From NCBI GenBank assembly GCA_002269645.1, contig NIVC01000010.1:62001-126000 (forward strand): 64,000 nucleotides of DNA, written 5' to 3'. The stretch comes from Macrostomum lignano. Lineage: Eukaryota. Both the position numbers and the translations under genes were made by a program. Position 1 is the first letter of the stretch. Each line of letters opens with the position of its first letter. This document shows, piece by piece, positions 17,092 through 63,206 of the stretch. Below the pieces are notes generated by a model. It was not told the DNA's origin, did no database searches, and worked only from the letters and a program-made list of their open reading frames with translations.

Positions 17092-17153
<62 letters not shown>

Positions 17154-17669
17154 GTCTGTCTCGGCCCCATCAAATTCCAAACCAATTCCACTCCACTGCA
17201 GGCCGTCCGCTTATTAAAATCGGCCTCAGCCGACAGCTCGGTCACCCTGCGCCTCATGGACGGTCCGGAGTCCTGGTCGGCCTCGGCCGATCCGGCTTCG
17301 AATTTCCAGCCGAGCTGGTCCTACTGGCTGGCGCTGCCCCGTTGGCTAAGCGTCGAGCGCGACGTCGAGCTGAGCCGACACCCGGCCACCGGCTCTCTGG
17401 GATTCTCCATCGTGGGCGGTAGGAATTCTCCCAGCGAGTCGTCGTCGTCAGCCTCGGCCGGTCCACACCCGGTGGTGGTGAAAAGCATCGTCTGGGGCGG
17501 GCCCGCCCACGAGGATGGCCGGCTGCGTTGCGGCGACATTTTGATTAGCGTGAACCACCGGCACAGCCTGGCGGATATTGGGCACGCTCAGGCCGTGTCG
17601 CTGCTCAAATTGGTGCGCACAGATCCGGTTGTGCTCACCATCGTGTCATGGCCTGGTACTATTGTTTAA
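2431..17669 (+). CDS. LNX: LNX1/LNX2-like E3 ubiquitin ligase (Zn-RING-Zn, extra TRAF-type Zn finger, 4 PDZ domains), spliced
   Basis: Phase-consistent exons: 3792-4175, 6574-6734, 12263-12355, 12436-12587, 12696-12814, 14838-14921, 15192-15457, 15655-15802, 16629-17072, 17202-17669 (2319 nt, 773 codons including stop). The translation contains CRACGQFH...[26 protein letters not shown]...CPID (RING), [11 protein letters not shown]...CDLESHL, four PDZ GLGF-type loops ([31 protein letters not shown]) and the LNX-type C-terminus [10 protein letters not shown]. The 3792 exon has no in-frame ATG, so an upstream exon is needed. The best candidate is the Gln/Pro-rich ORF 2275-2553 (ATG 2431; phase-0 donor at 2548 GC or 2554 GT). 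The 5' end is uncertain. Confidence 0.9.
2630..3640 (+). repeat. Minisatellite, 30-bp unit GGAAGCACCTGGGAACGGTATCAGGACCCT (~33 copies)
   Basis: Direct tandem array in the first inferred LNX intron. Confidence 0.95.
4798..5022 (+). mobile_element. tRNA-derived SINE, copy 1 (3'-truncated)
   Basis: A-box-like TAGCCTAGTTGT (4805-16) and B-box GGTTCGATTCT (4849-59), followed by GGACACTTAACTCTGCATTGCTTCAGTTCACCCAACTGTGAAATTGG. Homologous to the copies at 16221 and 41089. Confidence 0.85.
5026..6376 (-). mobile_element. Composite repeat (polypurine tract plus Helitron/DINE-like segment), copy A
   Basis: 5026-5228 is the reverse complement of ~50840-51040. 6290-6376 is the reverse complement of ~48563-48670. 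An AG-rich tract of ~1.1 kb lies between them. Confidence 0.7.
6783..8026 (+). repeat. Minisatellite, 22-bp unit CAAATTTATGATTTGTGATGAT (19- and 22-bp variants)
   Basis: Starts about 45 nt after the 6735 donor. Confidence 0.95.
8760..9740 (+). repeat. Minisatellite, 36/34-bp unit CTTCAGTCATGCTATAAAGTCATAGATAAGGAATGA
   Basis: Direct tandem array in an LNX intron. Confidence 0.95.
10412..10617 (+). CDS. Candidate alternative first (or cassette) exon of the LNX gene
   Basis: ATG at 10412 opens an Ala/Ser-rich reading frame that ends at a GG|GTAAGG donor (GT at 10618-10619). This donor is phase 2, matching the phase-2 acceptor at 12263. The upstream sequence 10100-10400 is non-repetitive and GC-richer. 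Confidence 0.5.
10654..10750 (+). repeat. (CTGT)n microsatellite
   Basis: Lies about 35 nt after the candidate 10618 donor. Confidence 0.95.
11962..12156 (+). repeat. (GATA)n microsatellite
   Basis: Long TAGA/GATA run upstream of the 12263 acceptor. Confidence 0.95.
12838..13110 (+). repeat. Minisatellite, ~34-bp unit TTCACAAGCTCAGAATTTCACATAGACTCCAGGC
   Basis: About 8 copies, starting ~25 nt after the 12815 donor. Confidence 0.9.
13700..14325 (+). repeat. Minisatellite, 23-bp unit TTCATAACAGTTAGATATCGGCC
   Basis: Direct tandem array in an LNX intron. Confidence 0.95.
16221..16484 (-). mobile_element. tRNA-derived SINE, copy 2
   Basis: The reverse complement reads TAGCCTAGTG...GGGGTTCGATTC...CACTTAACTCTACATTGCTTCAGTTCACCCAGCTGTAAAATGGGTGCCAGC...CAGTCCTTGGACTGAACAGCCGTACGCAGCC. 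It lies in an LNX intron. Confidence 0.88.
17093..17161 (+). repeat. (CTGT)n microsatellite in the 129-nt last LNX intron
   Basis: Lies within intron 17073-17201. Confidence 0.95.
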
Positions 17670-18879
17670 CGTTGAAATCAAGTGTGTAAGGCTAGAATCT
17701 TTTGTTGTGCTATTCGGTTACTAATCGTTTGTTGCTTAGCAACCGAGATGTTTATCTTTGGATACGGAGGATAAGTTACTTTGCCTAGTAACGGAAGTGT
17801 TTACCTTGGATACCGATCAGTTACGTTGCTTAGCAACGGAAGTGCTTACTTTGGATACCGAACGGTTATTTTGCTTAGCAATGGGAGTTTTTACCTTGGA
17901 TACCGATTGGTTGATTCGCTTAGTAACGGGAATGGTTATATTAGAGACCGATTGGTTACCGTTGCAACGGGAGTGTTTTCCTTGCGTTCGTGCTTTAAGG
18001 AATTACGTCATCACCATAGCAACTGAGTGTTTGACTACTAATATTTGGTCATAAGTGACGTCTCCGTTCTTATAAACCATTAGACCTTATGCTACTCTCC
18101 GGTTCAAATTGTGCCATTTTAGTGGTTCTGCAAAAAGACTTCATGTGTAATGAAAGTCGTATGAGAATTGTGTGTGAAAGTCAAGTCGTTTGTTTTACAA
18201 TTTCAATCCTTGCTTTCTACTCTACTTTTAAGATTGTCACACAGTATTGCCTTCGAATTAAAATAATGATCAATTTCTCAAATTTTGTACTTACCTGCAA
18301 ATATTGGTAATATAATGGATTATAATGGATATTGTTCATGATTTTTCGCTTTTTGTATAGTTTTTTTCTTGTTATATCCGCTTACCGCTACTGTTATAAG
18401 CAGGTCAGTTGCATAAATGAAGCGTAAATGTCGCTTTTTTATAACTAGTCAGTGGCAAGTTGAGTAAACAAACAATAAACCGCTAGTACCTGTGTAAAAA
18501 AGCATATTTTTACCCAATTTTGAGTTTCAGCTGTTTCATGTATATATTATATTGTTTATGCATAGCGTTTTTTGTTCATACTCGTAAAAATTGCCTAACA
18601 GAGAATCGCTTCTTGTACACACGAATTCGGGCGCCATTCACTGCTGTAATCTTTGGTTTGCTTTTATTGGTATTCGATTATTGTTTCAGCTTGTCATATT
18701 TCTAGTCTTAACAAATTCAACTTCGCATTGCAACTTATTTACTTATTTTTTGTTACTTCTGTTTACCTTGCTTAATGAATATATTTTTAGAGTGCTGGCT
18801 GAATTATTAGTATGTTATTAAGCTTCAAAACATGACAGTTTATGTTGACTCATCCACCCGCATCCAGTCTGCCTAGCAA

Positions 18880-21160: not shown

Positions 21161-24100
21161 TTAATCATCACTGTCCCAGTCGTTGGCCAGGATGCGAAGG
21201 TCGCCGCGAATGTAGTCGCGGTACAGGTCGTAGGGCACCGGCTTTCCAGGAAAGTCGTCAAACTCGACTAGGAAGCGCTGGTCGAGGACGTCGCGGCTCA
21301 ATCCTGGCGTTGGCACCTGCCGGATGATGTAGCCAGCGTTCCATTCTTCATAGTCCGCTACGTCGGAGTCTTCGTCGACGTACGCGAAGAGCATTTCGAT
21401 GCGGAGACCGGCATAGAGACGCGGCAGGCCTGATTGCGTGCTGTCTGGCTGGGCATCCGCGCTGGCCTCATCACTGGAGACCGTAGCTGAAGGCCGGGCG
21501 CCGCGACCACGCCCTCGGCCTCGGCCTCCTTCACGCTGGTGTCCTTTGCCACGGCCACGTCCTCTACCGCGCTGCACACTGGCATTGGGGGGCTTGGCCT
21601 TCTTCACTGTGGAGGCAGCAGGTGGCCCGCTCGCTTTGGACAAAATGGCCTGGACGGCGGATTTGACACGTTCCTCGCGAACTTCGGATGCCAGGGTCGA
21701 GCCGGAATGTGGCGTGGCTGACTGCTGTGCTGCCTCCGTCTGCTGTGCCAGAATTTCCAGAACTTCTTCCAGATTCTGGTGCAGCTGGGCCAAAGAAAAG
21801 CGCACGCCACGAGCCGAGAAGTTAAGCAGATGGCTCTTATCCTTCGGCAGGACCATCTCTGTGATAAATGAAGTAATATTTTTGTAAATGTACACTTTTT
21901 CCACTTATATCAGACTTTTCTTTGACAAGTTACATAAAGTTACGAGCTTTTTTGGCATTTGTAAATTGTTATGTCACTGTTTTGAATAAGAAAGGTAACG
22001 CAGCTTGCTCAGACTTACTGGTACACTTGTGGAGCCGCAGTTGCGCCTTTATTGCAGTTTCCTGTTCGGCAGGCTGCAGCGATGCCAGATTACTGGCCAT
22101 ACCCTCTGCGGTGCGCCACATGCCTCCGTATGACTCGACGCCACTGATGGTGTTGCGCAGGTTGGCCGCACGCTGCTGCTTTTTGCGCTGCCTCTCATCG
22201 AGCTTGCGCCGCATGAGCTCCTGGCGTCGCTCACGATTCAGGGTTGCCAATCTGGCTGCCCGACTCTCCATCAGCGGCGCAAGGGCCCGGGCCCGGGTCA
22301 AGATGAGGTCCTTCTCGCCCTCGGACTTTTCCCGGAGCCAGTCGGCGGTGCGATTCTGGCCGAACAGGACGGTGGACTCCCTGGCCAGAAGCCTCATGTG
22401 CGGCTTGCCCTGGACTGAGTAGTCTAGTGCCGCAAACATTCGCTCCCCGGCGACGTTGTCCTTCGGTGCCTGTGCAGCCGCGGCTGAGTCCTCAGTGGAG
22501 AGGCTACGTAGGCGGCCGCCGTCAAGGTGGTCTGCCACTTCTCTCTGAAGCAGCACCAACATGTGGGCGCAGATGACCTGGTGTAGAAGAGAATGAAAAA
22601 TAGTAGTGGAATTTTTTTCAAACAATTTCATTTATCACTGACACATAACTATTGATGTTTTTGTCTGCTTCTGTTCATAGTCCTAGCTTTTTTAACTAAC
22701 CTGAAGGGCTTGGCCGACAAGGCTGTTCTCCTCCAGGGACGCCTCCGCAGTCGTCAGCGCCTCCCAGGAGGTCTGCGCGTCAGCATCCCGCAGTACGGAG
22801 TGCGCCAGCTCGGGGAACGGGCCCTGCAGCTCAACCGATGGGGCGACACTGTCGGCCGAGGCGACGCTCTGCAGCCAACGATGGGCAGTCTCATAGTGCC
22901 GATTCATATCGATCAGCGTGACGCCTGAGTCGCGCAGCAGCGTCCACAGAGGCCGGATGAGCAGCAGGTCGAGTAACCCAAGGGCACGACAGCCAGCCAG
23001 CAGCACTCCGGAGGCGAGGTCAGCTTCCACCGCAAGCAGCAGGCGGTTCTTACCCTCCGACGCGGACAGAAAGGCCGATAGCACGTCCTTCTGCCGGTAG
23101 AGAAAGCCGCCATTGGGGAAAATCACATAAAGGCGATTCCCTCTGAAGTCCTCCATTCGGAAGGCCGGCTTATCGTGAATCGCCAAGTAGGACTCCAGCG
23201 ATGTAAAGACACCGCATTGCTCACTGCCTAGGTGATGAAAGGCCTTGCAAACAGTGCGGATCAGCCGCTGGGCGCCAGACTCTGCCTTTGACGGGTAAAA
23301 ACCTGCACACGCAGCAGCGCCAAGGGGCCCCAACGAGGCGCACTTCTCGAAATCGAGCAGCGCCTTGTCTGCAACACCAGCCAAATTCACAATGACGTGC
23401 ATGCCGCAGAAGAGGGCCACCATGCGAGGAGGCGCCGGCGCTCCCTGCCGATCGGCTAGCTGGGAGCGCATGTCGTTGAGCAGAAGCTGTTTTAATGTTC
23501 ATTTTTGTACGAAAAAATGTAACAACCGTATTACTTATTATTATTATTGTGTTTCAGTTTACGTTTACTGCCGGCTTGGTTTAAATTACTAGTTATATTA
23601 CTTAAAAGTTTACAAAAATAGGTGTTATAATATTAATAAGTACTAAGTAGTACTAGTAGGGCATTATTATTAATTAAGCAATTAAGTCCGAGGCCAAACG
23701 GCAAAAGGGTGTACAAACGTGAAGGCTTTTGTTGACAACGTGCCGGTCCGTCATCAGAAACTTCAGGGTCATCACCACGTTGCTCTTCATTTCCTGGCGC
23801 TCCTCGTCGCTGCGATCTCCAAGCGTGAGGGCGCAGTAGTTGTACACCAGATCGTCCATGCTGGCGTCGAACTCGCGGAAATACACTTCCGCAGTGCCGC
23901 CCTCCACCTCACGCAGCGACAGGCAGACGGTGCGGTTGGCGCCCAAGCCAGTGTCAATCTGCAAATTAGTGATTGTAATGTATTGTAAATTTAAGAATTA
24001 CGTATGCATTTTTTAGCAGCAAACATTCCAACTTTTTTACTGCTTTTTGCTTTTAATACTATTGTTGTTACACTTAAACACAGCTGTTGTAATGTGTTAA

Positions 24101-30420: not shown

Positions 30421-33400
30421 ATGGACAACAATAATAACAACGTCAACATGCTGCCGCAGCCGCACGGTGGATCAGCTTTCACCGCGTATTCTCGTCGCTC
30501 CTTGCAGCCACAACCAGTCTCGTCGACTTCAAGCTCTCACGCTGCTACTGCTAGTCCACATCCACAACAAGCAATAGCAGTTCACCGTCCTCAGCAGCAC
30601 TGTGTGCACCATCCGAATCAATATCCGCAGCAGCAGCACCAGCTTTATCCGCCGCATCTTCAACCGCCGCAATTTTCGCCTCGGCCATCTCTGCAGCACA
30701 AATGGCACTCCTATTGGAACGATTGGCAGCATTACTACTCCCATAACTATCCAATGCCAATACCAATGCCTATTATTAATCAGCATCATCCAGTTAGCCC
30801 GGCCGTCAGTCCTACAATCCGGCCTGTACTGATCCCGCCCGCTCAGCCAGTTTATTATCCGCAAACGCAACGGGCAGCTGTGCCGCATTATCAATATCGC
30901 CATTGTCCTCCCCAGCAGTCGGGCCAGCACAGTCGTTTCGCCGCTCCCTCTGGCAGGAGCAGTTTGCCAATGTCGGCCTCAGCAAAATCGGCTGCTGGCG
31001 GCAAGCCGCCTCTGCGCGCGGCCAGGCGACTGAATCAAGACCAATTAAGACCGGGCGATAATCGTAGAGCAACAATAAGCGCCATGACAGCTGTGGAACC
31101 GTTGGATCTTAGAATTGCTAGCAAGTGTAATCCCAGCAGCAGCACTACTAGCTCTGTTGCCACTGTTACTAATATCGCTTTGACAACAGGATTGTCTTCC
31201 TCGGCTCAGAAAGCTTCGCTGTCGCAATGGTGAGTTTAACTGTGTTGCTTTTGTCATTTTTTTATAATGGCTTTGTCCACTTCCTTATTCACTGTCCTCA
31301 GCAGCTCCCCACCTTCATCTGCCCCTCCATTCACTTCACTGTACTCAGCAGCTCCCCACCCTCATCCGCCCCTTATCCGGCCCCTCATTCACTGTCCTCA
31401 CCAGCTTCCCACCCTCATCCGCCCCTTATCCGCCCCCTCATTCACTGTCCTCAGCAGCTCCCCACCCTCATTCGCCCCTTATCCGCCCCCCTCATTCACT
31501 GTCCTCAGCAGCTCCCCACCCTCATTCGCCCCTTATCCGCCCCCCTCATTCACTGTCCTCAGCAGCTCCCCACCCTCATTCGCCCCTTATCCGCCCCCTC
31601 ATTCACTGTCCTCAGCAGCTCCCCACCCTCATCCGCCCCTTATCCGCCCCCTCATTCACTGTCCTCAGCAGCTCCCCACCCTCATCCGCCCCTTATCCGC
31701 CCCCCTCATTCACTGTCCTCAGCAGCTCCCCACCCTCATCCGCCCCTTATCCGCCCCCCTCATTCACTGTCCTCAGCAGCTCCCCACCCTCATCCGCCCC
31801 TTATCCGCCCCCTCATTCACTGTCCTCAGCAGCTCCCCACCCTCATCCGCCCCTTATCCGCCCCCCTCATTCACTGTCCTCAGCAGCTCCCCACCCTCAT
31901 CCGTCCCTTATCCGCCCCTCATTCACTGTCCTCAGCAGCTCCCACCTCACCCTCATCCGCTCCTTATCCGCCCCCATTCACTGTTCTCAGCATCTCCCCA
32001 CCCTCATCCGTCCCTTATCCGCCCCTCATTCACTGTCCTCAGCAGCTTCCACCTCACCCTCATCCGCTCCTTATCCGCCCCCATTCACTGTTCTCAGCAG
32101 CTCCCCACCCTCATCCGCCCCTTATCCGCCCCTCATTCACTGTCCTCAGCAGCTCCCCAGCATCGGGAAGACAGCAGAAGCAGCCAAGTAATTCGGAGCC
32201 AGCAGCGACCGAAGCCAGTTCGTCAATGGCTGTCAAAAAGGCCTGGTTGCACAAGTGGGCTGAGCAACAGATGGAGAAAAAGCAAATGCCGCCACCGATG
32301 CAGCCTCCTATTATGCGGAATTTGCCCAAACAGAAGCAGGCTAACATTGATGAGTCCGAATCGAACAGTTCAGGTACAGCGGTGGCGACAGCTGGGAACT
32401 CCAGGCCGACAGCAAAGGTGAGTTAGTAATTTATTTATTTATACTACCTTACTGCATACCTAAAATCGTTCAACACTTGAATATACTAAAAAGTATAAGC
32501 ACGTAGATGACTTGCGGCCAGCAAAGCCTCCCTGATCCTTTGAAACCTTACAATAGCAATCTGGCTCGCTCAATATTTGTCTCTTCTAAGCTCTCCTCTC
32601 TGCTCTCTACTGTCCTTGTAGATAAAGAAGACTTGGCCATTGGAGTAGCTGAAGTGTTATTAGCCCATCTGATGGTGTGGATAAAGACCCAACTATTAGA
32701 GTAGCTGAAGTGTCATTTAGCCCACCGGCGGGTGAGAATAAAGACTTAGCTATTAGAGTAAGTGCCATTAGCCCACCTGAGGGTGTGGAATCGTGGATAA
32801 AGACTTGGTTGGCTATTAGTGTTAAGAGTAGCTGGTGTCATTAGCCCACCTGGGAATGTGTATAAAGAATCAGCTATTAGAGTAGCTGAAGTGTCATTAG
32901 CCCACCTGGGAATGCGTATAAAGACTCAGCTATTAGAGTAGCTGAAGTGTCATTAGCCCACCTGGGAATGCGTATAAAGACTCAGCTATTAGAGTAGTTG
33001 AAGTGTCATTAGCCCACCTGGGAATGTGTATAAAGACTCAGCTATTAGAGTAGTTGAAGTGTCATTAGCCCACCTGGGAATGTGTATAAAGACTCAGCTA
33101 TTAGAGTAGCTAAAGTGTCATTAGCCCACCTGGGAATGTGTATAAAGACTCAGCTATTAGAGTAGCTGTAAGTGTCATTAGCCTACCTGGGATGTGTATA
33201 AAGACTCGAGTAGCTGTAAAAGTGTCATTAGCCTACCTGAGATGTGTATAAAGACTCGAGTAGCTGTAAAAGTGTCATTAGCCCACCTGAGATGTGTATA
33301 AAGACTCAGCTATTAGAGTAGCTGAAGTGTCAAACGCACACCTGAGATGTGGATATGGCTAAAGGCTTCGTCTAATAATAGAATAGGTGAAATCCTCAGA

Positions 33401-36400
33401 CTACTTGAGAATGTTAATGAAGTCACTGAACAGATGTAAACAGTCGGTTATAAATAAATTGACTGCATCGCATGATTAACACGAACACGATGCAGGCATC
33501 CAGAAAGCGGCAGTCGATCACTCTACCTACAGTGTTTGGATCATCCAAGACTGCCGCCGCGGCCTCAGCACTAACGGCAACAAGGCCTAAAGAGGCATCA
33601 GCGGGGAGGGCGTCGGATGGCGAGACCCTGCTATCGTTAGCATCGGTTGCTAACACGGCTAAGAGACGGTTGAGCTTGTCGACAGCAACTGCCACGAGCG
33701 ACGCTGGCGGTAAAAAACTCCACAAAATCCTGAAAATTTAAAAACCCCAATAATATAAAATGTTTCTCTTTATCTCCCTATAGGATAAATGAATAAACCA
33801 CAATTGTTTACCTGTAAAATGTAAAATCCTCTCGCCCGTCCCCACCTGCCAACAGAGAGCAGCAGATCAACAGAAGGTCAGGCGGACGCCAGCCAGACTC
33901 TCGTAGCTCTGCAGGGCAACACCTGTCGGGAGCTAGTCTACACTCGGCTGCCCCTGTGCAGAGACTGCCGGCTGATAGCCACGCCTCCGGTGGCCCAGCC
34001 CAGCTGCCGGTTCAAGGAGTTTAGAAAGTGAGCTCGATTGAAAACACCCGAGCAGTGCAGCTCTACTTTGTGTTTGGAGAATCTTCTAAAATCCCAATTG
34101 AGAATTGTCACTTATCTCATTGAGAACCGCCACTGATCCCATTTGAGAATCGCCACTGATCCCATTGAGAATCGCCACTGATCCCATTGAGAATCGCCAC
34201 TGATCCCATCGAGAATCGCCACTGATCCCATTGAGAATCGCCACTGATCCCATTGAGAATCTCCACTGATCCCATTGAGAATTGCCACTGATCCCATTGA
34301 GAATTGCCACTGATCCCATTGAGAATCGCCACTGATCCCATCGAGAATCGCCACTGATCCCATTGAGAATCGCCACTGATCCCATTGAGAATCGCCACTG
34401 ATCCCATTGAGAATCGCCACTGATCCCATCGAGAATCGCCACTGATCCCATTGAGAATCGCCATCTGACTTCATTAAGAATCCAGATCCCTATAAAGTAC
34501 ATTATGACTATAACTTATCCAGGCTGCGCCTATGCCAAGGCGTCCTCACGGTGGCGGGTTTCTGCTCCCTAGACGATGTGACACCAGCTGACACGGCTGA
34601 CTGGCGAGTCGAACCGGCCCCGCAGACGGCAACATCCTCAGGAGCCACCGCCGCCGCTGCAACCTCATCGCCGCAGCACAAGTTGCACCGAGACGTGGCT
34701 GCCAAGCAGTTGACACTGCTTCTGCCGCCGCTGCACCAGCTGCTTCAACGAGAATCGGCCGCGGTAGCTCGCTGGGCCGGCAGCGACCTGAACCAGCTGC
34801 TCTGGCGTAGGAAAAAGAAACGACAGAGGCGGCAGCCGATGACCGATTTGTGAGTCTGTGATTTTGTTTATGGAAAATTAACTATTGCTGAATGTTTCGT
34901 AATTCAAATCCCATTTCATAATCTAGAGCTGAAATGTCACTTTAGTCATCCCAATCAAGAATCCCCATCGAAAATCCTCCAATCTGAACTGAAATCCCTT
35001 CGAAAATCCCAATCTGAAATCCCATAGATAATATCCATATTTGAAATCCCATCGATAATATCCCTATTTGAAATCCCATCGATAATATCCCTATTTGAAA
35101 TCCCATCGATAATATCCCTATTTGAAATCCCATCGATAATATCCCTATTTGAAATCCAATCGATAATATCCCTTTTTGAAATCCCATCGATAATATCTCA
35201 ATCTGAAATCTCATCGATAATATCCCTGTCTGAAATCCCATCGATAATATCCCTATTTGAAATCGCATCGATAATATCCATATTTGAAATCCCATTGATA
35301 ATATCCCTATCTGAAATCCCATCGATAGTATCTCTATCTGAAATCCCATCGATAATATCCCTATTTGAAATTCCATCGATAATATCCCTATTTGAAATCC
35401 AATCGATAATATCCCTTTTTGAAATCCCATCGATAATATCCCTTTTTGAAATCCCATCGATAATATTCCTATCTGAAATCCCATCGATAATATCCCTGTC
35501 TGAAATCCCATCGATAATATCCCTATTTGAAATCCCATCGATAATATCCCTATTTGAAATCCCATCGAAAATATCCCTATTTGAAATCCCATCGAAAATA
35601 TCCCTATTTGAAATCCCATCGATAATATCCCTATTTGAAATTCCATCGATAATATCCCTTTTTGAAATCCCATCGATAGTATCCCTATTTGAAATCCCAT
35701 CGATAGTATCCCTATCTGAAATCCCATCGATAGTATCCCTATCTGAAATCCCATCGATAGTATCCCTATCTGAAATCCCATCGATAGTATCCCTATCTGA
35801 AATCCCATCGATAGTATCCCTATCTGAAATCCCATCGATAATATCCCTATTTGAAATTCCATCGATAATATCCCTATTTGAAATCCCATCGATAGTATCC
35901 CTATCTGAAATCCCATCGATAGTATCCCTATCTGAAATCCCATCGATAATATCCTTATTTGAAATCCCATCGATAATATCCCTATTTGAAATTCTATCGA
36001 TAATATCCCTATTTGAAATCCAATCGATAATATCCCTTTTTGAAATCCCATCGATAATATCCCTTTTTGAAATCCCATCGATAATATTCCTATCTGAAAT
36101 CCCATCGATAATATCCCTGTCTGAAATCCCATCGATAATATCCCTATTTGAAATCCCATCGATAATATCCCTATTTGAAATCCCATCGAAAATATCCCTA
36201 TTTGAAATCCCATCGAAAATATCCCTATTTGAAATCCCATCGATAATATCCCTATTTGAAATTCCATCGATAATATCCCTTTTTGAAATCCCATCGATAA
36301 TATCCCTATTTGAAATCCCATCGATAGTATCCCTATCTGAAATCCCATCGATAATATCCTTATCTGAAATCCCATCGATAGTATCCCTATCTGAAATCCC

Positions 36401-39400
36401 ATCGATAATATCCCTATTTGAAATCCCATCGATAATATCATTTTTTGAAATCCCATCGATAATATCCCTATTTGAAATCCCATCGATAATATCATTTTTT
36501 GAAATCCCATCGATAATATCCCTATTTGAAATCCCATCGATAATATCATTTTTTGAAATCCCATCGATAATATCCCTATTTGAAATCCCATCGATAATAT
36601 CCCTATTTGAAATCCCATCGATAATGTCCATATTTGAAATCCCATCGATAATATCCCTATCTGAAATCCCATCGATAATATTCCTATCTGAAATCCCATC
36701 GATAATATTCCTATCTGAAATCCCATCGATAATATCCCTATTTGAATTCGCCTTGATCCAGGTCCCGTTGCCTGGAGCCGGAGACGCCGGTCAATCAAAT
36801 CCCACCCGAGGAGCAGTGCACCAGATGCGGCAGCCCAATATTTAGCATGCACCTGGTCTGCCTAGAATGCGGCTACAGTCTCTGTCTGACGTGCTCAAAT
36901 TCCCTAGCTAACTATCCCGACCAGCAGCCTCAGCAGCCGCAGCAATTCAGCGAGGACTGCCCCTCTTGGCGGCACTGCCCAGACCGCATGAAACCAGTTT
37001 GCCTTATGCCGCCGGACTATCTGGCTAATCTGGCTCGAGCTGCCGATCAGTTAGCAGAGGATTTGGTGTCTAAAAATCCTCATTCCGACCCGGGGGCCAC
37101 TGATGAAGCTGGCAATGCTGACAGCAGCAAGCCTGGGGATTGCGCTGTGCGATTGTCCGTGCCTTTAGCCTCGCTTGCCGACTTTCGAACTCGTTGGATT
37201 AAGCGGCTGCCGATTGTGCTAACAGGATGCCTGAAGCCTGCCAACAGCGGTGCCGAGTAAGTAAGAGGGACATCTCGTACTTTATTAACTGGTACAAATA
37301 TATAAAGAGCAGATACACCTGACAGGGAAAGAGGAGGTGCACAGGGAGAGGGGAAGAGGGGTGCACAGGGAGAGAGGGGAAGAGGGTGTGCACAGGGAGA
37401 AAGGAAGAGGGAGTGCACAGGGAGAGGGGAAGAGGGGTGCACAGGGAGAGAGGGGTAGAGGGTGTGCACAGGGAGAGGGGAAGAGGGGGTGCACAGGGAG
37501 AGGGGAAGAGGGGGTGCACAGGGAGAGGGGAAGAGGGAGTGCACAGGGAGAGGGGAAGAGGGGTGCACAGGGAGAGAGGGGAAGAGGAGGTGAACAAGGA
37601 GAGAGGGCAAGAGAGAGTGCACAGGGAGAGGGGAAGGAGTGCACAGGGAGAGGGGAAGAGGGGTGCACAGGGAGAGGGGAAGAGGGGGTGCACAGGGAGA
37701 GGGGAAGAGGGGGTGCACAGGGAGAGGGGAAGAGGGGGTGCACAGGGAGAGGGAAAGAGGGGTGCACAGGGAGAGAGGGGAAGAGGAGGTGAACAAGGAG
37801 AGAGGGCAAGAGAGAGTGCACAGGGAGAGGGGAAGGAGTGCACAGGGAGAGGGGATTAGAAATTAGCCGACTAAAATTGAACTATAATATTGCTGGCACT
37901 ATGTACCGCCAACAGCAGTGGGGAGTCGCTGTGTCTCCCAAACAGCAGCGCCAGCAGCCAGCCTCGCCAGTGTTTCAACTCCGCTCTGATCGACTGCATC
38001 AGCGGCGCGCCCGTGACCCCACCTACTGGCCAGACAGCCGAGACCACGTTCTGGTGCCACAGCTCTAACGAGGAGGCCGGCACAGCCGCCAGGCTGCGAC
38101 TGATACAGTGGCCAGCGCCGAGCGACGCTGAAGCCCTGCTGAAACAGCTGGTGCCCGATTATATCAGGTTGGTTGCTAGGGCTCCAGTAGGTTAATGACC
38201 GACTGCTTAAGTAGCTTTATGACCCTGACTCACCCCAGTAGCTTTATGACCCCGACTGACCCCAGTAGCTTTATGACCCCGACTCACCCCAGTGACCCCA
38301 GTAGCTTTATGACCCTGACTCACCCCAGTAGCTTTATGACCCCGACTGACCCCAGTAGCTTTATGACCCCGACTCACCCCAGTGACCCCAGTAGCTTTAT
38401 GACCCTGACTCACCCCAGTAGCTTTATGACCCCGACTGACCCCAGTAGCTTTATGACCCCGACTCACCCCAGTAGCTTTATGACCCCGACTGACCCCAGT
38501 AGCTTTATGACCCCGACTCACCCCAGTGACCCCAGTAGCTTTATGACCCTGACTCACCCCAGTAGCTTTATGACCCCGACTCACTCCAGTAGCTTTATGA
38601 CCCCGACTCACCCCAGTAGCTTTATGACCCCGACTCACCCCAGTAGCTTTATGACCCCGACTCACCCCAGTAGCTTTATGACCCCGACTCACCCCAGTAG
38701 CTTTATGACCCCGACTCACCCCAGTAGCTTTATGACCTCGACTCACCCCAATAGCTTTATGACCCCGACTCACCCCAGTAGCTTTATGACCACGACTCAC
38801 CCCAATAGCTTTATGACCCCGACTGACCCCAGTAGCTTTATGACCCCGACTCACCCCAGTGACCCCAGTAGCTTTATGACCCTGACTCACCCCAGTAGCT
38901 TTATGACCCCGACTGACCCCAGTAGCTTTATGACCCCGACTCACCCCAGTGACCCCAGTAGCTTTATGACCCTGACTCACCCCAGTAGCTTTATGACCCC
39001 GACTCACTCCAGTAGCTTTATGACCCCGACTCACCCCAGTAGCTTTATGACCCCGACTCACCCCAGTAGCTTTATGACCCCGACTCACCCCAGTAGCTTT
39101 ATGACCCCGACTCACCCCAATAGCTTTATGACCCCGACTCACCCCAGTAGCTTTATGACCACGACTCACCCCAATAGCTTTATGACCCCGACTCACCCCA
39201 GTAGCTTTATGACCCCGACTCACCCCAATAGCTTTATGACCCCGACTAACCCCGTCGGATTTATGAATTGGTAGCTTCAGTATTAGTACCTTTACTAACG
39301 GTGTGGACAGAAAACCTAGCAGAGATAAGTGGCCCATCTAAATTAATGGCTTCATAAACAAAGTACCCATGCTACCACACGCCAACCACCACCGACATCT

Positions 39401-41822
39401 GCCCAGTCCGCATGGCTGCTTCAACATGGCTTTGCGCAAGTTTCAAACAGCCTCCAGATTGGTTAGTGGGCACCGCGGAAGCGACTGCTATCTGCGCATC
39501 GCCTCCCGCGACATTGTCAGTCTGGCCCTGCTGCCTCCGTCAGCCTCGAGCGTCTCGGATGACCAGCCAGTTGCAGCTGTGTGGCACGTGTTCCATAGCG
39601 AGTCACTGCGCCAGCTCAATGAACAAATATACCAGTTGGAGCTGCAGACTGTCAGGTATGACCTATCGTCTCTGACTTCGCTTCATTTAGGGACCTGACA
39701 CCTGTGATTGCTTGACATTTAGATACCTGACACCTGTAATTGCTTGATATTTAGGTACCTGACACCTGTAATTGCTTGATATTTAGGGACCTGACACCTG
39801 TAATTGCTTGATATTTAGGGACCTGACACCTGTGATTGCTTGACATTTAGATACCTGACACCTGTAATTGCTTGATATTTAGGTACCTGACACCTGTAAT
39901 TGCTTGATATTTAGGGACCTGACACCTGTAATTGCTTGATATTTAGGGACCTGACACCTGTGATTGCTTGACATTTAGATACCTGACACCTGTAATTGCT
40001 TGATATTTAGGTACCTGATACCTGTAAAATTGCTTGATATTTAGGGACCTGACACCTGTAATTGCTTGATATTTAGGGACCTGACACCTGTGATTGCTTG
40101 ATATTTAGGGACCTGACACCTGTGATTGATTGATATTTAATGACCTGACACCTGTCATAATTTAGCTCGATTTAGGGACCTGCACCTGACACCTGTCATA
40201 ATTTAGCTCGATTTAGGAACCTGACACCTGTGATTGCTTGATATTTAGGGACCTGACACCTGTAATTGCTTGATATTTAGAACCTGACACCTGTGATTGC
40301 TTGATATTTAGGGACCTGACACCTGTAATTGCTTGATATTTAGGGACCTGACACCTGTAATTGCTTGATATTTAGGTACCTGACACCTGTGATTGCTTGA
40401 TATTTAGGGACCTGACACCTGTGATTGCTTGATATTTAATGACCTGACACCTGTCATAATTTAGCTCGATTTAGGGACCTGCACCTGACACCTGTCATAA
40501 TTTAGCTCGATTTAGGAACCTGACACCTGTGATTGCTTGATATTTAGGGACCTGACACCTGTAATTGCTTGATATTTAGGGACCTGACACCTGTGATTGC
40601 TTGATATTTAGGGACCTGACACCTGTGATTGCTTGATATTTAGGGACCTGACACCTGTGATTGCTTGATATTTAGGGACCTGACACCTGTAATTGCTTGA
40701 TATTTAGGGACCTGACACCTGTGATTGCTTGATATTTAGGGACCTGACACTTGATCATAGCTGGATTTAGAGACCTAACACCTGTAACTTGACATGGATC
40801 TGATACGCCAGTTTGACCTCTTATGAGCCATTCTGCTCACCGTTTACCCCTCCCCCCCTCCTTCATACTATTCAGATATCTGGACGACTCAAGTCTGACT
40901 CGACTGGCTGGCGTAGCTCCGCTGCAGCCGCCGCCAATTGTACTGCGCCAGCGCTGCGGCGAGGCGGTGCTGCTGCCTGCGGGATGCGCCTTTCAGGTTC
41001 GCCCATGTAGTTTCTTTTGCTGGGATGACTGGGGATAGCAGATGCAGACTCGCGGATACTGATGGAGCGGAGAGGCATATTCAAGGATATTGATTGATTG
41101 GGCAGATGTGCAACCGATAGCACAGCCGCAGCTATTGCCCGGCGCATCTGAAGGCTGCGTACGGCTGTTCAGTCCAAGGACTGGGGGGTCGCCACACAGG
41201 GGTGCTTTCACAAGGTCGAAATTTCATAACATCGAAAACTCATATAGCAGCCACTTTCACAACGTCGAAAATTTAATATAACAAGAACCATACAGTAGTT
41301 TTCTACGTTGTGAAATTTCGACCTTGTGAAGTCCCTTGCTAAAGTTTTCGATCTTGTGAAAGGTGCTTTCGACGTTGTGAAATTTCGAGTTTGTGAAACC
41401 CCCCCCCGCCACACACACCTTCAATTACCCCAGCTAATGCTGGCACCCATTTTACAGCTGGGTGAACTGAAGCAATGCAGAGTTCAGTGTCTTGCTCATG
41501 GACTTGTTCGAAGTGGGTCGTGAATCGAACCCCCGACCTTTCAGTCGTGAGTCCGTCTCTCTAGCCTACTACAACCCCCTCCTCTCTCTAAGGATACTGA
41601 GTTTATCCTCATCGATATCACACACACACACCTCTTCAAACTCATTCTGTCCCGCAGTTCCGCTTCGAGATGACGGGCACCCAGGCTCAGACGGATTTCA
41701 GCAGCGCGGAGTCCATGGCGCAGTGCCTGGCCAGCAATTGGACGGGCGTGCTAGCGCACGACGACTGCCTGGAGATGAGCCTGTTCCAGCGGGTTCGCCT
41801 CTGCATTTCCAGCCTTGAGTGA
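30421..41822 (+). CDS. KDM3: KDM3/JMJD1/Hairless-family zinc-finger JmjC protein, predicted catalytically inactive, ~1023 aa
   Basis: Exons 30421-31229, 32150(or 32153)-32417, 33496-33709, 33856-34027, 34523-34849, 36762-37256, 37916-38167, 39407-39655, 40876-40996, 41658-41822 (3072 nt, phase-consistent). KDM3 hallmarks: LQGNTC..LPLCRDCRL...CRFKEFRKL...GVLTVAGF; CTRCGSPIFSMHLVCLECGYSLCLTC (C6 finger); LRLIQWP; PDYISPHGCFNMA; AAVWHVF; YLD...GEAVLLPAG; DFSSAESMAQC. Confidence 0.85.
31275..32155 (+). repeat. C-rich minisatellite, ~53-55-bp unit containing TTCACTGTCCTCAGCAG
   Basis: Fills intron 1 of the KDM3-like gene; the last unit supplies the inferred acceptor. Confidence 0.92.
32690..33350 (+). 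repeat. Minisatellite, 56-bp unit TATTAGAGTAGCTGAAGTGTCATTAGCCCACCTGGGAATGTGTATAAAGACTCAGC
   Basis: Intron 2 of the KDM3-like gene. Confidence 0.92.
34100..34462 (+). repeat. Minisatellite, 22-bp unit GAGAATCGCCACTGATCCCATT
   Basis: Intron 4 of the KDM3-like gene. Confidence 0.95.
34970..36745 (+). repeat. Minisatellite, 27-bp unit GAAATCCCATCGATAATATCCCTATTT (~65 copies)
   Basis: Intron 5 of the KDM3-like gene; ends ~16 nt before the 36762 acceptor. Confidence 0.96.
37325..37855 (+). repeat. G-rich minisatellite, ~24-27-bp unit GTGCACAGGGAGAGGGGAAGAGGG
   Basis: Intron 6 of the KDM3-like gene. Confidence 0.95.
38205..39250 (+). repeat. Minisatellite, 27-bp unit CCCAGTAGCTTTATGACCCCGACTCAC
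   Basis: Intron 7 of the KDM3-like gene. Confidence 0.96.
39685..40790 (+). repeat. Minisatellite, 32-bp unit ATTTAGGGACCTGACACCTGTAATTGCTTGAT
   Basis: Intron 8 of the KDM3-like gene. Confidence 0.96.
41089..41578 (-). mobile_element. tRNA-derived SINE, copy 3, interrupted by a MITE
   Basis: Same head, central domain and 3' region as copies 1 and 2, with a (CAAT)n-like tail. It lies in the last intron of the KDM3-like gene. Confidence 0.88.
41199..41406. mobile_element. 208-bp MITE with 9-bp TSD (Mutator-like)
   Basis: Imperfect TIRs GGGGTGCTTTCACAAGGTCGAAATTTCATAACATCGAAA and TTTCGACGTTGTGAAATTTCGAGTTTGTGAAACCCC. TSD CGCCACACA at 41190-41198 and 41407-41415. The insertion is absent from SINE copies 1 and 2. 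Confidence 0.8.
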
Positions 41823-42029
41823 CCCGGCCTCACCTGTGCGCTTGCGACCACTAAAGCTTCTCTATCGTGAGAGCTGGTGACGATATTGTGACTTTAAACA
41901 GTCCTTGCTGCTAAAGACTAACATTTGTCTACCATCATCCCAGCATTTTATTGTTTCAGAATGATTAATTATTTGATTTTTAACCGTGCTGACCTTGAGC
42001 CGTTGGGCGTCTCAACCGAAAGCCCGTAT

Positions 42030-42500
42030 CTCACCCCACTTCTCTCAGAATCTCACCCAACTTCTCTCATAATCTCACCCCAGTTCCCTCAAAATCTCAC
42101 CCTACATCCATCAGAATCTCACTCCACTTCCCTTAGAATCTCACCCTACTTCTCTTGGAATCTCACCCCACATCTATCAGATCAGAATCCCTCCCCACTT
42201 TTCTGAGAATCTCACTCCACTCCCCTTATTATCTCACCCTACTTCTCTTGGAATCTCACCCCACATCTATCAGATCAGAATCCCTCCCCACTTTTCTGAG
42301 AATCTCACTCCACTCCCCTTATTATCTCACCCTACTTCTCTTGGAATCTCACCCCACATCTATCAGAATCCCTCCCCACTTTTCTGAGAATCTCACTCCA
42401 CTCCCCTTATTATCTCACCTTACTTCTCTCATAATCTCACCCCATTTCCCTCAGAATCTCACCCCACATCTGTCAGAATCTTACCCTACTCTCACTATCT
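42030..42500 (+). repeat. Degenerate (AATCTCACCCC)-type repeat downstream of the KDM3-like stop
   Basis: Repeated AGAATCTCAC motifs with an internal block duplication (~108 bp). Confidence 0.8.
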
Positions 42501-47717: not shown

Positions 47718-54982
<7,265 letters not shown>

Positions 54983-58600: not shown

Positions 58601-59136
58601 CTGTTTGAGTCACATATAAGAGTACCTCTGGTAGTGCCTCTTCCCAAATAAGACCTTTGGGAACTTTCTCTACTAATTAGGTATCATATTATTATTCATT
58701 GTAGACTAATAAAACTAAATAGTTGATTCCCAGTTAGCCATTATTATCTATTATATCACTTATTAATTTTTAAGTTAGGCCCTCCTACTAAGTAATTATT
58801 TTTAACAAAAGTAATTTAACATGTGAAACTACAGGATCATACATGCCCAACACCCATCCAAACTAGATGGGTGAAATGGTCGCTGGCCAAGGTACAAGGG
58901 GTGTCCCAGAAGTAGTGTTGTAGTGAGTTGCAAGTGTACTTGTATGCGCCAGTCGCTAGAGCGGGGTGGGGGTTGCTATTGTACAGCATGTACGTGCTTT
59001 TCACCCACCCCTGTCTCTATCTTTTATACCCAGTTATGTAACAATCGTTGTATTGTATTTAACCTGCGTATCGATCTAATAAACGCCAAGAGGCTTCATC
59101 AACTCTCAGTTGTATCTCTCTGCCTTAGTCTACAAC

Positions 59137-59147
59137 TGGTAGCAGAG
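59137..59147 (+). promoter_or_regulatory. Primer-binding site complementary to the initiator tRNA-Met 3' end
   Basis: TGGTAGCAGAG lies 2 nt after the LTR end. It is the reverse complement of CUCUGCUACCA, the 3' end of metazoan initiator tRNA-Met as I recall it. Confidence 0.75.
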
Positions 59148-59159
59148 CAAAATTCTAGA

Positions 59160-59890
59160 ATGGCTGAGAAAGGTTTGACCGCCAGTGCAGCGCTGCCCAG
59201 AGTTTTCAGTACCGGCAACTTTAAGGAATGGCTGCAGTGTTTCAATGTATGCGCAAAAGTCAACAAGTGGGACACGTGCAAAGCGGAGCGACTGGCCACA
59301 TATTTGGATGGCGAGGCTCTCGTCGTTTATTTGGAACTGTCGGCAGGAGATCAGGCAGACTACGACAAAGTAGTCCAGGCATTGGATGATGCATTATACC
59401 CGAACCGCGAGCACTTCGCCGTCATGGAGGCGTTCAAATCAAGGAAGATTTTGTCGAATGAGACTCCACGCATGTATCTTTACGAGTTAAAGAAGATGCT
59501 CAAAAGCTCCTCCGTGGACAACAAAGATGCTCATGAGGCTCTGCTGTTCCATCAGTTCGTCTGCGGCTTTCCCGAATCCGTGAGCTGGCAGATTCGCGCG
59601 GACTCCAGCGTTAAGACCTCAGAGCAAGCGCTTCAAAAGGCTCAGCTACAGCTCGCCAAGCATCCCAGCAGCAGCGGTGCAAAGTCTGCACTGTGCAGAG
59701 TCTGCAGGCATCGGTGAGCACCCTGAGTTCCCAGCTGCAGCAGCTGGCAGCCTGTGGAGTGAGGACGAGTAGCACAACGAGACCGCAGCACCGTTCGAAG
59801 TCTGACATCATCTGCTACAACTGCCACAAGGCCGGCCACATTGCCAGAGATTGCTACAGCAGGCGACAGCCGGGAAACGCCAGAGGCTGA
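59160..59890 (+). pseudogene. gag: Gypsy gag with CCHC zinc knuckle, one internal frameshift
   Basis: ATG at 59160 gives MAEKG...FKEWLQCF...LATYLDGEAL. A frameshift near 59680-59700 leads into CYNCHKAGHIARDC (CX2CX4HX4C). Stop at 59888-59890. Confidence 0.85.
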
Positions 59891-62800
59891 GGTGTGCGGG
59901 CCCGCAACCCCGGCCAGCAGTAACTGCGGGCCCAGCAGCAGCGGCTTCAAGGCCGGCGCTCACAGTCGGCGGGATCTTCGACGGATGCAGCGTCGCGCCC
60001 GACCGACTATCGCAGTGTGAGTGCAAGCTTGATGGCAGAAGTGTGAAGGCGCTGTTAGACACCGGAAGCCAGTGCTCACTAGTTGAGTCCAGCATCCTGA
60101 CAAAATCCCAGCTCAGACAGGCAACTGCAGCCAGAGTGCAACTTCATTCAGTGAACAAGCAGCCAATTAGCATAGAACGGCAAATCGAATTGCCACTTAC
60201 AGTCGGTGGAGTGACAGCCCGGCAATTGTTTTTCGTTGTGTCAGGTTTGGTCTGCCCTGTCATTGTTGGAGTCGACTTCATCGGCAAGCATAATTTGCAA
60301 CTGGACTTCACAGGATCTTCACAAGAAGCCGGCCAAGTCTGCAGCACCAGATTCCAGGCTGACACCGACGATCCAGTTGACATCGAAGACGCACTCGTCC
60401 CCGAGTTCAGCTGTGAAGAGTTCGAGTTGCCGACTACCGACGACCCTGATGTACAACGGCTGCTGGTGGAGTTCAAAGACTTGTTCAAGAAAAAGCCGGG
60501 ACTAACTCATCTGCAACAGCACCGAATTGTTCTCTCGGATGAAGTACCTGTCCGAGTGCCACCGCGCCGAATGCCTGTGCATTACCGGGAGAAGGTAGAG
60601 CAGCTGATTCAGGAACTGCTGGAGAACGACGTGATAGAGCTGAGCGAAAGTCCGTACGTGGCCCCATCGGTGTACGTGACAAAGAAGGATGGCATTCTCC
60701 GCCTGACCATAGACTATCGAGAGATCAACAAGAAGACTATTCGCTCTGCACAGGGAATTCCGTTGATGGAGGAGGCAAGAGATCGAATCGCAGGCAGTTC
60801 AGTGTTCTCTGTGTTGGATCTCAATGGAGGCTATTTTCAAATTCCGATGGCAAAAGAAGACAAGCTAAAAACTGCTTTCTGTCCGGGACCAGGGATGCCG
60901 CTGTACCAATTTAAGAGAATGCCCCAAGGTCTGTCGGGGGCCCAAGCACATTCTGCATGCTAATGTCAAAAGTTTTCAACGGCTGCGATTTCATCTTCAC
61001 GTTCTTCGATGACAGCCTGTGCTTCTCAAAGACCAAGTCGGATCATCTGCGGCAACTTCGAGAGACCTTCGAGCGACTTCGAGCAGCCGGACTGACATTA
61101 AGAGGCTCCAAGTGCAAGATCGCGGTACCCGAAGTGACCTTTCTCGGCACACGGTATTCAAAGGATGGTGCCCAGCCCAGCCAGGAGAAGCTGGAGGCAA
61201 TTCAGCAGTGGAGAGAGCCGAGGTCAGCCAAGGAGGTGCGTCAGTTCATCGGCCTGTGCAACCAATACCGACGCCATGTAGCCAACTTCGCTGCCATCGC
61301 CGCACCGCTGCACCATCTGACTGGCAAGGGCGTTCCATTTGACTGGAATTCGGAATGCCAGACGGCCTTCGACGAGCTCAAAAGGTGCCTAATTAGTCCT
61401 CCGATCCTGGTGAACCCGGATTTCACTAAGGAGTTCTCAGTCTTCACGGATGCCAGTGGCAGCGGAGTCGGTGCAATTCTCAAGCAAGGCGAGGCGGTGA
61501 TCGAGTTCTCAAGCCGCGCATTCAATTCAGCTGAGAAGAAATACTCTGCAACAGAAAAGGAGTGCCTGGCCATCCTGCACGCATTCAAAGTTTTTCGCCA
61601 CTATCTTCTCGGCAAGCATTTCACGGTGCACACGGATCACTGCCCGCTCACCTACATCGATTCACAGAGAGTTGACAGCTACGGCAGGCTAGGACGATGG
61701 CGTCTGCTGCTTCAAGAGTTCGACTTCACCGTCAAGTACCGAAGAGGCGTTGAGAACTCAGATGCTGACGCGCTGTCCAGACTGCATGGCCAAGAAGTCG
61801 CAGCTACGCAGCTGACTCCGGAAATCGACACTGAAGAGCTCAAAACTGCGCAGCGACATGACCCGGAGCTCAGCCAGGTGATTCAGGCGATGGACAAGGA
61901 CGCAGAAATTGCACCCAGATGGCGAGCAGGACCACTGCAGCAACTCGGCAGAATCTGGAAGAAGCTGAAGCTGGATGATGACGGTGTTCTACTGCGCAAG
62001 TTCAATGACCCGGACGGCCTGCGGGAGGTTCCAGTGGTGGCAGCGCGGCTTTGACAACAGTTTTTGACCAACGCTCACGAAGGTCTGGGAGGTCATTTCG
62101 GAGCCGAGAAATGCTACCGCACACTGAAACTGACCGCCTACTGGCCCGGCATGGCTGAAGACATCGTGCAACACTGCCAGAGTTGTTCTGTCTGTCAGGA
62201 GAAGAAAGCGGGCTCGCGGACCAGCGCGCCACTCGGAGAACTGCCAATCGGCTCGCCGTGGGATTCTGTGGCTATCGACATCGTCAAGGTGGCGCCATCA
62301 TCGCGCGGCAACAAATACCTGCTGGTGGCTCAGGATCAGTTTTCCAAGTACCTGACGGCCGTGGCGATTCCTGACCAGACTGCTGAGACTACTGCTCGCG
62401 CCTTCCTCTCCATCTGCTCCCAGACTGGACTTCCCTGAGTCATCCACTCCGATCAAGGACCGAATTTCGAGTCTCAGCTTTTTCAAGACACTCTGCGAGG
62501 CCTGGGAGTCACGAAGACAAGAACAACGGCTTACAATCCCAAAGGCAACGGATTAGCGGAGTAGGGCAACAAGTCAGTGCTGCAGTTACTCAGGTGTTTC
62601 ACCGAGCGAGAGAGCGAGTGGGAGGACAAGCTGCCACTGATCCTGCTGTCCTACAATTCCCGGTGCACTGCTCAACACAGCTGCCGCCACTGAAGGTGTT
62701 CACCGGGCGCGATCCGAGCCTGCCGGTCATCAGCCAGCAGTCCAGGCGATTCTATGACGTGCGCACCTACGCCGACAAGCTCGAGGGCGACCTGCTGCGA

Positions 62801-63206
62801 ATTCGAGAGTTTGTCGAGGAGCATCTGGTGCAGGCGGCTGGCGAGCAAAAGAGCGGCTACGACAGGTCGACCGGGCAGCTGCGCACGTTCAGTCCTGGAG
62901 ACGAGGTCCTGCTGTGCATCGAGCTGAGGGGCTCCAAGCTGGCGCCTTACTGGGAGCCCGGGCTGGCAGGTGCTGTCGCAGCGGGATCTGGTAGTCGAAA
63001 TCCAAAAGATCGAGAACGGCCGGACCCGCAGGGTGAATGTGAATCGTCTGCGGCCGCGGATCCTGCCAGTCCCTGACGGAGAGCGCTTCCTGCAGCCGCC
63101 CTTTGCGCACGCGGCGCACGGCGGCGATGAGGCGGACGAGGAGCCGCCCCCGAGACGCTACCCGGTGCGTAGGTGGATGCCGGTGGATCGCTATGTGGCC
63201 GGTTGA
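59872..63206 (+). pseudogene. pol: Gypsy pol (protease, reverse transcriptase, RNase H, integrase), disrupted
   Basis: LLDTGS (protease); IDYREIN, LDLNGGYFQI, MPQGL, TFFDD (RT); TDASG, YSATEKECLAI, TDHCPL (RNase H); H-x5-H...CxxC, AIDIV, HSDQGPNFES, GNGLAE (integrase). Lesions: frameshift ~60945, in-frame TGA 62052-54, frameshift ~62435, TAG ~62561 and further frameshifts downstream. Confidence 0.92.

Follow-up and report, generated by a model that had tools for sequence, protein, structure and literature searches.

Dead JmjC proteins are already a known kind. The classical animal case is JARID2 (Jumonji), a JmjC protein without iron ligands that is a chromatin cofactor with no catalytic role; it falls into another, KDM5-like JmjC subfamily, and its architecture, with JmjN and ARID domains, is also different. 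In the KDM3 family, which includes the animal demethylases of mono- and dimethylated histone H3 lysine 9 (H3K9me1/2) KDM3A and KDM3B (JMJD1A/B, JHDM2A/B), the only clear dead member known to us is the plant protein JMJ24. In this Arabidopsis member of the KDM3/JHDM2 subfamily the cofactor-binding residues are mutated, H3K9 is not demethylated and the role is non-catalytic; the protein has RING domains, and CMT3 is the target of its E3 ligase activity (PMC8657654). The demethylase activity of JMJD1C (KDM3C) is disputed (PMC7280979). Here we describe a gene on the plus strand of a 64,000-nucleotide stretch of the flatworm Macrostomum lignano genome (assembly GCA_002269645.1, contig NIVC01000010.1, positions 62,001 to 126,000; the whole stretch is called the window below) which, judged by its sequence, is a descendant of the KDM3/JHDM2 family and in which all three Fe(II) ligands of the family have been replaced.

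Following open frames and GT-AG sites through the window gave a model of 10 exons and 1023 codons with no internal stop, in which all nine introns are GT-AG and all 18 splice dinucleotides are intact (Table 1). The model rests on sequence alone, and it bears out the intact open reading frame (ORF) over 10 exons that a preliminary description of the locus had proposed. Three acceptors are ambiguous. That of exon 2 is so because it lies within the last copy of the intron-1 minisatellite, each copy of which carries the splice-acceptor-like sequence tcctcag; like the acceptor of exon 4, for which they are at 33874, 33877, 33907 and 33937, it has in-frame alternatives. The third is the NAGNAG acceptor of exon 7. 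All three are outside the ligand positions and leave the JmjC exons unaffected. The DNA of the window is eukaryotic, its exons being GC-rich and its introns packed with minisatellites; seven of the nine introns of the gene are each filled by a minisatellite of their own, with units of 22-107 base pairs (bp) in up to 65 copies.

Membership of the KDM3 family by descent follows from the presence of both a KDM3-type zinc finger and a KDM3-type JmjC region. The finger is of the C2HC4 type, has the spacing C-x2-C-x7-H-x2-C-x2-C-x4-C-x2-C and lies N-terminal to the JmjC region, an arrangement and spacing common to KDM3A and KDM3B. None of the seven zinc ligands, six Cys and one His, has been lost, as the preliminary description had said of the cysteines; the spacing is identical in nine retrieved invertebrate KDM3 proteins, whose fingers the flatworm finger also resembles residue by residue. 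For the JmjC region, the comparison set was the 120 listed of 490 KDM3-family matches to a human KDM3A JmjC query; these relatives are all C-terminal fragments of at most 617 amino acids (aa), and all have a Pfam JmjC domain. A HMMER profile was built from 103 KDM3 proteins, MAFFT L-INS-i was run with 102 domains and hhalign with 24 diverse members. With the gene model as the only target, the profile scored 19.6 bits (E 1.6e-8), its best stretch being aa 899-994, and exon 9 alone reached E 0.0027. Using hhalign, 246 columns, starting at FRTRW and reaching the domain's end, were aligned with a probability of 96.6% (E 6.2e-10) and 23% identity, the MAFFT alignment was collinear with the KDM3 domains over the full length of the C-terminus, and the best pairwise phmmer score against KDM3 relatives was 34 bits. 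In a phmmer search of the PDB the sole match was JMJD1C, at E 0.07 and in three sub-threshold pieces. The motifs FW, WP, Y, WH, YLD, LPAG.Q and DF.S.E, shared with KDM3A and KDM3B, occur in collinear order. In exon 6, FRTRWIKRLPIVLTG corresponds to KDM3 FRECWKQGQPVMVSG; exon 7 holds FW and RLRLIQWPAPSD, the latter corresponding to KDM3 LKLKDWPPGEDF; and AVWHVF of exon 8 corresponds to KDM3 ALWHIY. On these alignments a JmjC-type fold may well be retained.

The catalytic positions of this region are altered. The first His is replaced by Arg876 (CGC, 39495-39497) at a column that is His in 102 of 102 KDM3 proteins, the Asp by Ala878 (GCC, 39501-39503) where all 102 have Asp or Glu, and the distal His by Phe968 (TTT, 40991-40993) where 101 of the 102 have His. 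LRIASRD pairs with LHLDVSD in the MAFFT alignment; Ala stands at the Asp column in both MAFFT and hhalign, and the first-His column holds Arg in MAFFT and a gap in hhalign. AGCAFQ pairs with AGAPHQ in MAFFT, hhalign and HMMER, which places Phe at the distal His. Fourteen residues ahead of the HxD strand are deleted, including GTTN, of which the T and the N are each conserved in 98 of 102. With the Fe(II) ligands and GTTN lost, canonical iron binding and demethylation would therefore not be possible; as read from the gene model, the product does not have the HxD/E...H triad of KDM3 enzymes. At the Lys column of CIKVAEDF, supported by MAFFT and HMMER, the flatworm protein has Gln978 (CAG, 41682-41684). 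This column is Lys in 95 and Gln in 6 of 102 KDM3 proteins; one of the six is a fish JMJD1C (P0061), and human JMJD1C, too, has Gln there in its structure. Since Gln is also the JMJD1C state, the change is not diagnostic, and literature confirmation that this Lys is a 2-oxoglutarate ligand was not found. JMJD1C itself differs from the flatworm protein in keeping His, Asp/Glu and His.

Much of this had been anticipated by eye. The three JmjC peptides quoted in the preliminary description occur in the frames given there, its four substituted codons are exactly placed, and its alignment was reproduced by MAFFT, with agreement from hhalign at the Asp and distal His and from HMMER at the distal His and Lys. 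Where HMMER, MAFFT and hhalign covered the ligands, none of them placed His, Asp and His at those positions, and its central claim, a KDM3-family gene that has lost all three Fe(II) ligands, stands. Its fourth substitution, Lys to Gln, is correctly recorded but does not distinguish a dead protein. Its comparison with Hairless (HR, KDM3D), than which the protein was said to be more thoroughly inactivated, does not hold: this divergent KDM3-family member is known mainly as a transcriptional corepressor but, unlike the presumably inactive flatworm protein, is reported active on H3K9me1/2 in a statement of PMC7280979 that cites Liu et al. 2014, and it is the wrong yardstick because it is a reported H3K9 demethylase. 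The earlier interpretation is thus partly supported, being right in its core and overstated in details and novelty.

Upstream of the finger the protein is less readily assigned. The first 450 residues are low-complexity and rich in Gln and Pro, and an N-terminal Cys cluster follows at aa 454-502. Just ahead of the finger, three LxxLL motifs lie at aa 551, 558 and 577 (34710-34802), all inside 31 residues. Such motifs are a known feature of KDM3 proteins (PMC7280979) and are present in both KDM3A and KDM3B; their excess here is marginal (3 observed against 0.77 expected, with at least 3 in 4% of shuffles). The basic stretch RRKKKRQRR at aa 583-591 (34806-34832), after the LxxLL motifs, is likely a nuclear localisation signal. 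No Pfam family scored above threshold in the N-terminal 597 aa or in the C-terminal 426 aa, and in neither part did Pfam reveal a RING or other added catalytic domain; the sole RING-like match, at 18 bits where 30 are required, was below threshold and sat on the C2HC4 finger itself. JMJ24 is the closest precedent, being likewise a KDM3-family member with mutated cofactor residues, but it differs in having RING domains, and since it is a plant protein the two losses are independent.

Table 1. Features of the window. Positions are numbered from the first letter of the window; aa numbers refer to the 1023-codon gene model.
Feature	Position	Strand	Remarks
Exon 1	30421-31229	+	aa 1-270; initial ATG with in-frame stop ahead; Gln/Pro/His/Ser-rich low-complexity N-terminus
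Exon 2	32150-32417	+	aa 270-359; acceptor ambiguous
Exon 3	33496-33709	+	aa 360-431
Exon 4	33856-34027	+	aa 431-488; first part of N-terminal Cys cluster CRELVYTRLPLCRDCRLIATPPVAQPSCRFKEFRK
Exon 5	34523-34849	+	aa 488-597; end of Cys cluster, three LxxLL, basic cluster RRKKKRQRR
Exon 6	36762-37256	+	aa 597-762; C2HC4 zinc finger and start of JmjC-flanking region
Exon 7	37916-38167	+	aa 762-846; NAGNAG acceptor 37916/37919 (by eye)
Exon 8	39407-39655	+	aa 846-929; strand that bears HxD in KDM3 reads YLRIASRD
Exon 9	40876-40996	+	aa 929-969; RYLDDSSLTRL and GEAVLLPAGCAFQ, Phe968 at distal His position
Exon 10	41658-41822	+	aa 970-1023 and stop codon; FRFEMTGTQAQTDFSSAESMAQCL with Gln978
KDM3-type C2HC4 zinc finger CTRCGSPIFSMHLVCLECGYSLCLTC	36817-36894	+	aa 616-641
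JmjC-like domain	37174-41732	+	aa 735-994, spliced over exons 6-10; collinear with KDM3 JmjC
Minisatellite arrays	31283-32159, 32825-33332, 34091-34482, 34990-36746, 37324-37855, 38210-39253, 39685-40787, 42028-42490		one array just 3' of the stop codon
Multi-PDZ-domain gene	12600-17670	+	
Multi-exon 1092-aa gene P0123 (BOX15_Mlig018636g1) in 7.3 kb segment	19671-26961	-	no Pfam domain
Short interspersed element	41109-41578 (+), 16221-16470 (+), 4798-5022 (-)		three copies, 85-95% identical
CDK-like kinase gene P0124	51176-54979	+	HRDLKPQN intact; DFG reads DFN at 53675-53683
Ty3/gypsy-type long terminal repeat (LTR) retrotransposon remnant	58900-63100	+	protease, reverse transcriptase, RNase H, integrase-like region

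Whether the gene has been maintained was judged from its frame and from the pattern of retained residues. The spliced sequence has no stops in the model frame, which also has the highest codon-usage odds, and 37 and 40 in the other two. When the C-terminal 1281 nucleotides were shuffled 2000 times, not one shuffle was free of stops. When neutral drift was simulated on the coding sequence, about 24 stops had accumulated at a divergence replacing half of the residues and none of 300 runs was still open; with as few as 0.05 substitutions per site, a single run of 300 stayed open. KDM3 consensus residues are retained at 22 of 48 columns that are at least 98% conserved, so that about half of the residues there are replaced, and retention declines steadily with decreasing conservation, variable columns keeping 9 of 115. 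We infer that selection has acted on the frame through almost its entire history, with room for a very recent death. A frame kept open by selection would therefore imply a protein that does something other than catalysis. In the preliminary description the gene had been called maintained; the open frame and the retained-residue pattern speak for this, and nothing further was found to support it.

Taken together, these findings are best explained by a selectively maintained, non-catalytic KDM3-family protein that is nuclear and acts through its finger-plus-JmjC module, and we put the probability of this reading at about 0.62. The architecture retained would comprise a disordered Gln/Pro-rich N-terminus, the LxxLL cluster, a stretch resembling a nuclear localisation signal, the C2HC4 finger and a JmjC-type fold. 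The module might form a pair with a second protein of the KDM3 type, or it might bind the H3 tail or chromatin factors, and H3K9 methylation would then be modulated rather than removed, for which the dead plant JMJ24, with its different added activity, offers a comparison. Several observations weigh against this reading. Searches of protein collections, representatives and metagenomes together with exact look-ups returned no orthologue, homeologue, paralogue, transcript or annotated protein. Exons 6-10 had no match at E <=0.01 in the protein collection, in a search that scores only the 8000 candidates with the most common words, a list that low-complexity words may crowd. That collection includes M. 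lignano proteins, as a combined query with three neighbouring ORFs showed, P0123 and P0124 of Table 1 being among them; none of these proteins matched exons 6-10, and the gene therefore seems to be unannotated in the M. lignano sets. No other observation weighs as heavily against a live gene. Exon 6 found only two repetitive bacterial proteins, and no real relative, among 1.84 billion representatives. Pfam JmjC (PF02373, gathering threshold 24 bits) did not match even at E 10, whereas the ordinary KDM3 proteins P0001, P0012 and P0024 reached 69, 60 and 53 bits. The JmjC-like domain has four deletions relative to KDM3 in the MAFFT alignment, the GTTN segment and three others, so the fold is not assured. 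The mechanism of partner or scaffold, finally, is one that we purely infer. Exon 6 likewise had no match in a metagenome scan, and exact look-ups of the exon 1 ORF, of an ORF of the retrotransposon in Table 1 and of the kinase P0124 gave no record. Our literature search yielded no relevant report on a Macrostomum JmjC protein or demethylase, nor on JmjC pseudoenzymes.

The same absences would be expected if the locus were a dying or recently dead redundant KDM3 duplicate in the duplicated M. lignano genome, one that has not yet acquired a stop codon. The missing annotation, the failure of Pfam JmjC, the four deletions, one of them in a conserved cofactor-side segment, the lack of any relative of exon 6 among representatives and metagenomes, and minisatellites in seven of nine introns all fit such a duplicate. 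Divergence from KDM3 is, however, far too large for neutral drift to have left the frame free of stops, as the simulation indicates, and a dead gene would hardly be expected to keep every splice dinucleotide, all seven zinc ligands with their spacing, and a retention of residues concentrated at family-invariant structural positions. Death too recent to have left any lesion would require a coincidence, and we regard this explanation as unlikely, though it is the most serious competitor. Less probable again, but still deserving a place, is the proposal that the gene is the sole KDM3 orthologue of Macrostomum, in a lineage that has given up KDM3-type H3K9me1/2 demethylation and kept the non-catalytic role alone. 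No protein named as Macrostomum is among the 120 of 490 KDM3 matches listed, spiralians usually have a single kdm3 (annelids, PMC12153100; one Schistosoma mansoni model, PMC4159997), and the lineage evolves fast, as the neighbouring kinase P0124 at about 39% identity to its nearest relatives outside the genus indicates. Most of the listed matches are unnamed, however, and an intact Macrostomum KDM3 may be among the others.

Two further explanations would restore catalysis, and both are very improbable compared with a selectively maintained non-catalytic protein. Were the gene model an artefact, the true transcript would use other exons or another frame to restore HxD...H. A sequence-derived model and the ambiguous acceptors of exons 2, 4 and 7 leave some room for this, but those acceptors lie upstream of or outside the ligand positions, and the substitutions sit within the very exons with the best KDM3 alignment, of which exon 9 is one. 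In addition, when the whole 64 kb was scanned in six frames with the KDM3 profile, nothing KDM3-like came up apart from the exons of the model itself, and no alternative exon that would restore the triad. Hardly credible, and the least probable of all, is an oxygenase that still binds metal through non-canonical residues. Its sole point of support is an HSE tripeptide (FHSES) elsewhere in exon 8, but in the alignments this falls on the strand following the insertion loop of KDM3 (ALWHIYAAKD), away from the metal site; the triad positions themselves are occupied by Arg, Ala and Phe, and the GTTN segment is deleted.

Several other features share the window. The 7.3 kb segment carrying P0123 recurs at 99.9% identity in NIVC01003597.1 and NIVC01001135.1 of the same assembly (GCA_002269645.1). 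Neither contig shares anything but this repeat with the window, and the sequence on either side of it is different in all three places; the segment has the look of a dispersed repeat or mobile element of recent origin. P0123 itself is 100% identical to window positions 22695-23498 on the minus strand, and its paralogues, at 54-57% identity, are named as DUF659 or ANK-repeat proteins. At its end the short interspersed element is similar to a tRNA T-arm in reverse complement (gaatcgaaccc), and its intron 9 copy additionally contains an internal inverted repeat at about 41200-41405. The coding region of the retrotransposon is spread over at least three frames (ORFs 58923-59717, 59851-60963 and 60957-62054), and because it is split in this way the element is probably broken. 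The kinase P0124 has a long low-complexity C-terminal tail. An ORF stretch of the multi-PDZ gene, at about 17070-17200, runs through a CTGT-type microsatellite and is probably intronic. Rfam had no match in the window.

Dead enzymes that are kept by selection reveal which jobs of a family need no catalysis. Catalysis-independent roles of KDM3 proteins are debated, as for JMJD1C, and an animal example would be a natural separation-of-function allele. M. lignano is a regeneration model open to transgenics and RNA interference, and the flatworm gene could serve there to find out what function the finger-plus-JmjC module has when demethylation is absent. Its value is limited in that it is a single gene model from one fast-evolving, duplicated genome. 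If the gene were indeed the only KDM3 orthologue, a regenerating flatworm would have turned the one KDM3-type H3K9 demethylase that it had into a chromatin factor without catalysis, and the conserved KDM3 job in this animal would be structural, not enzymatic.

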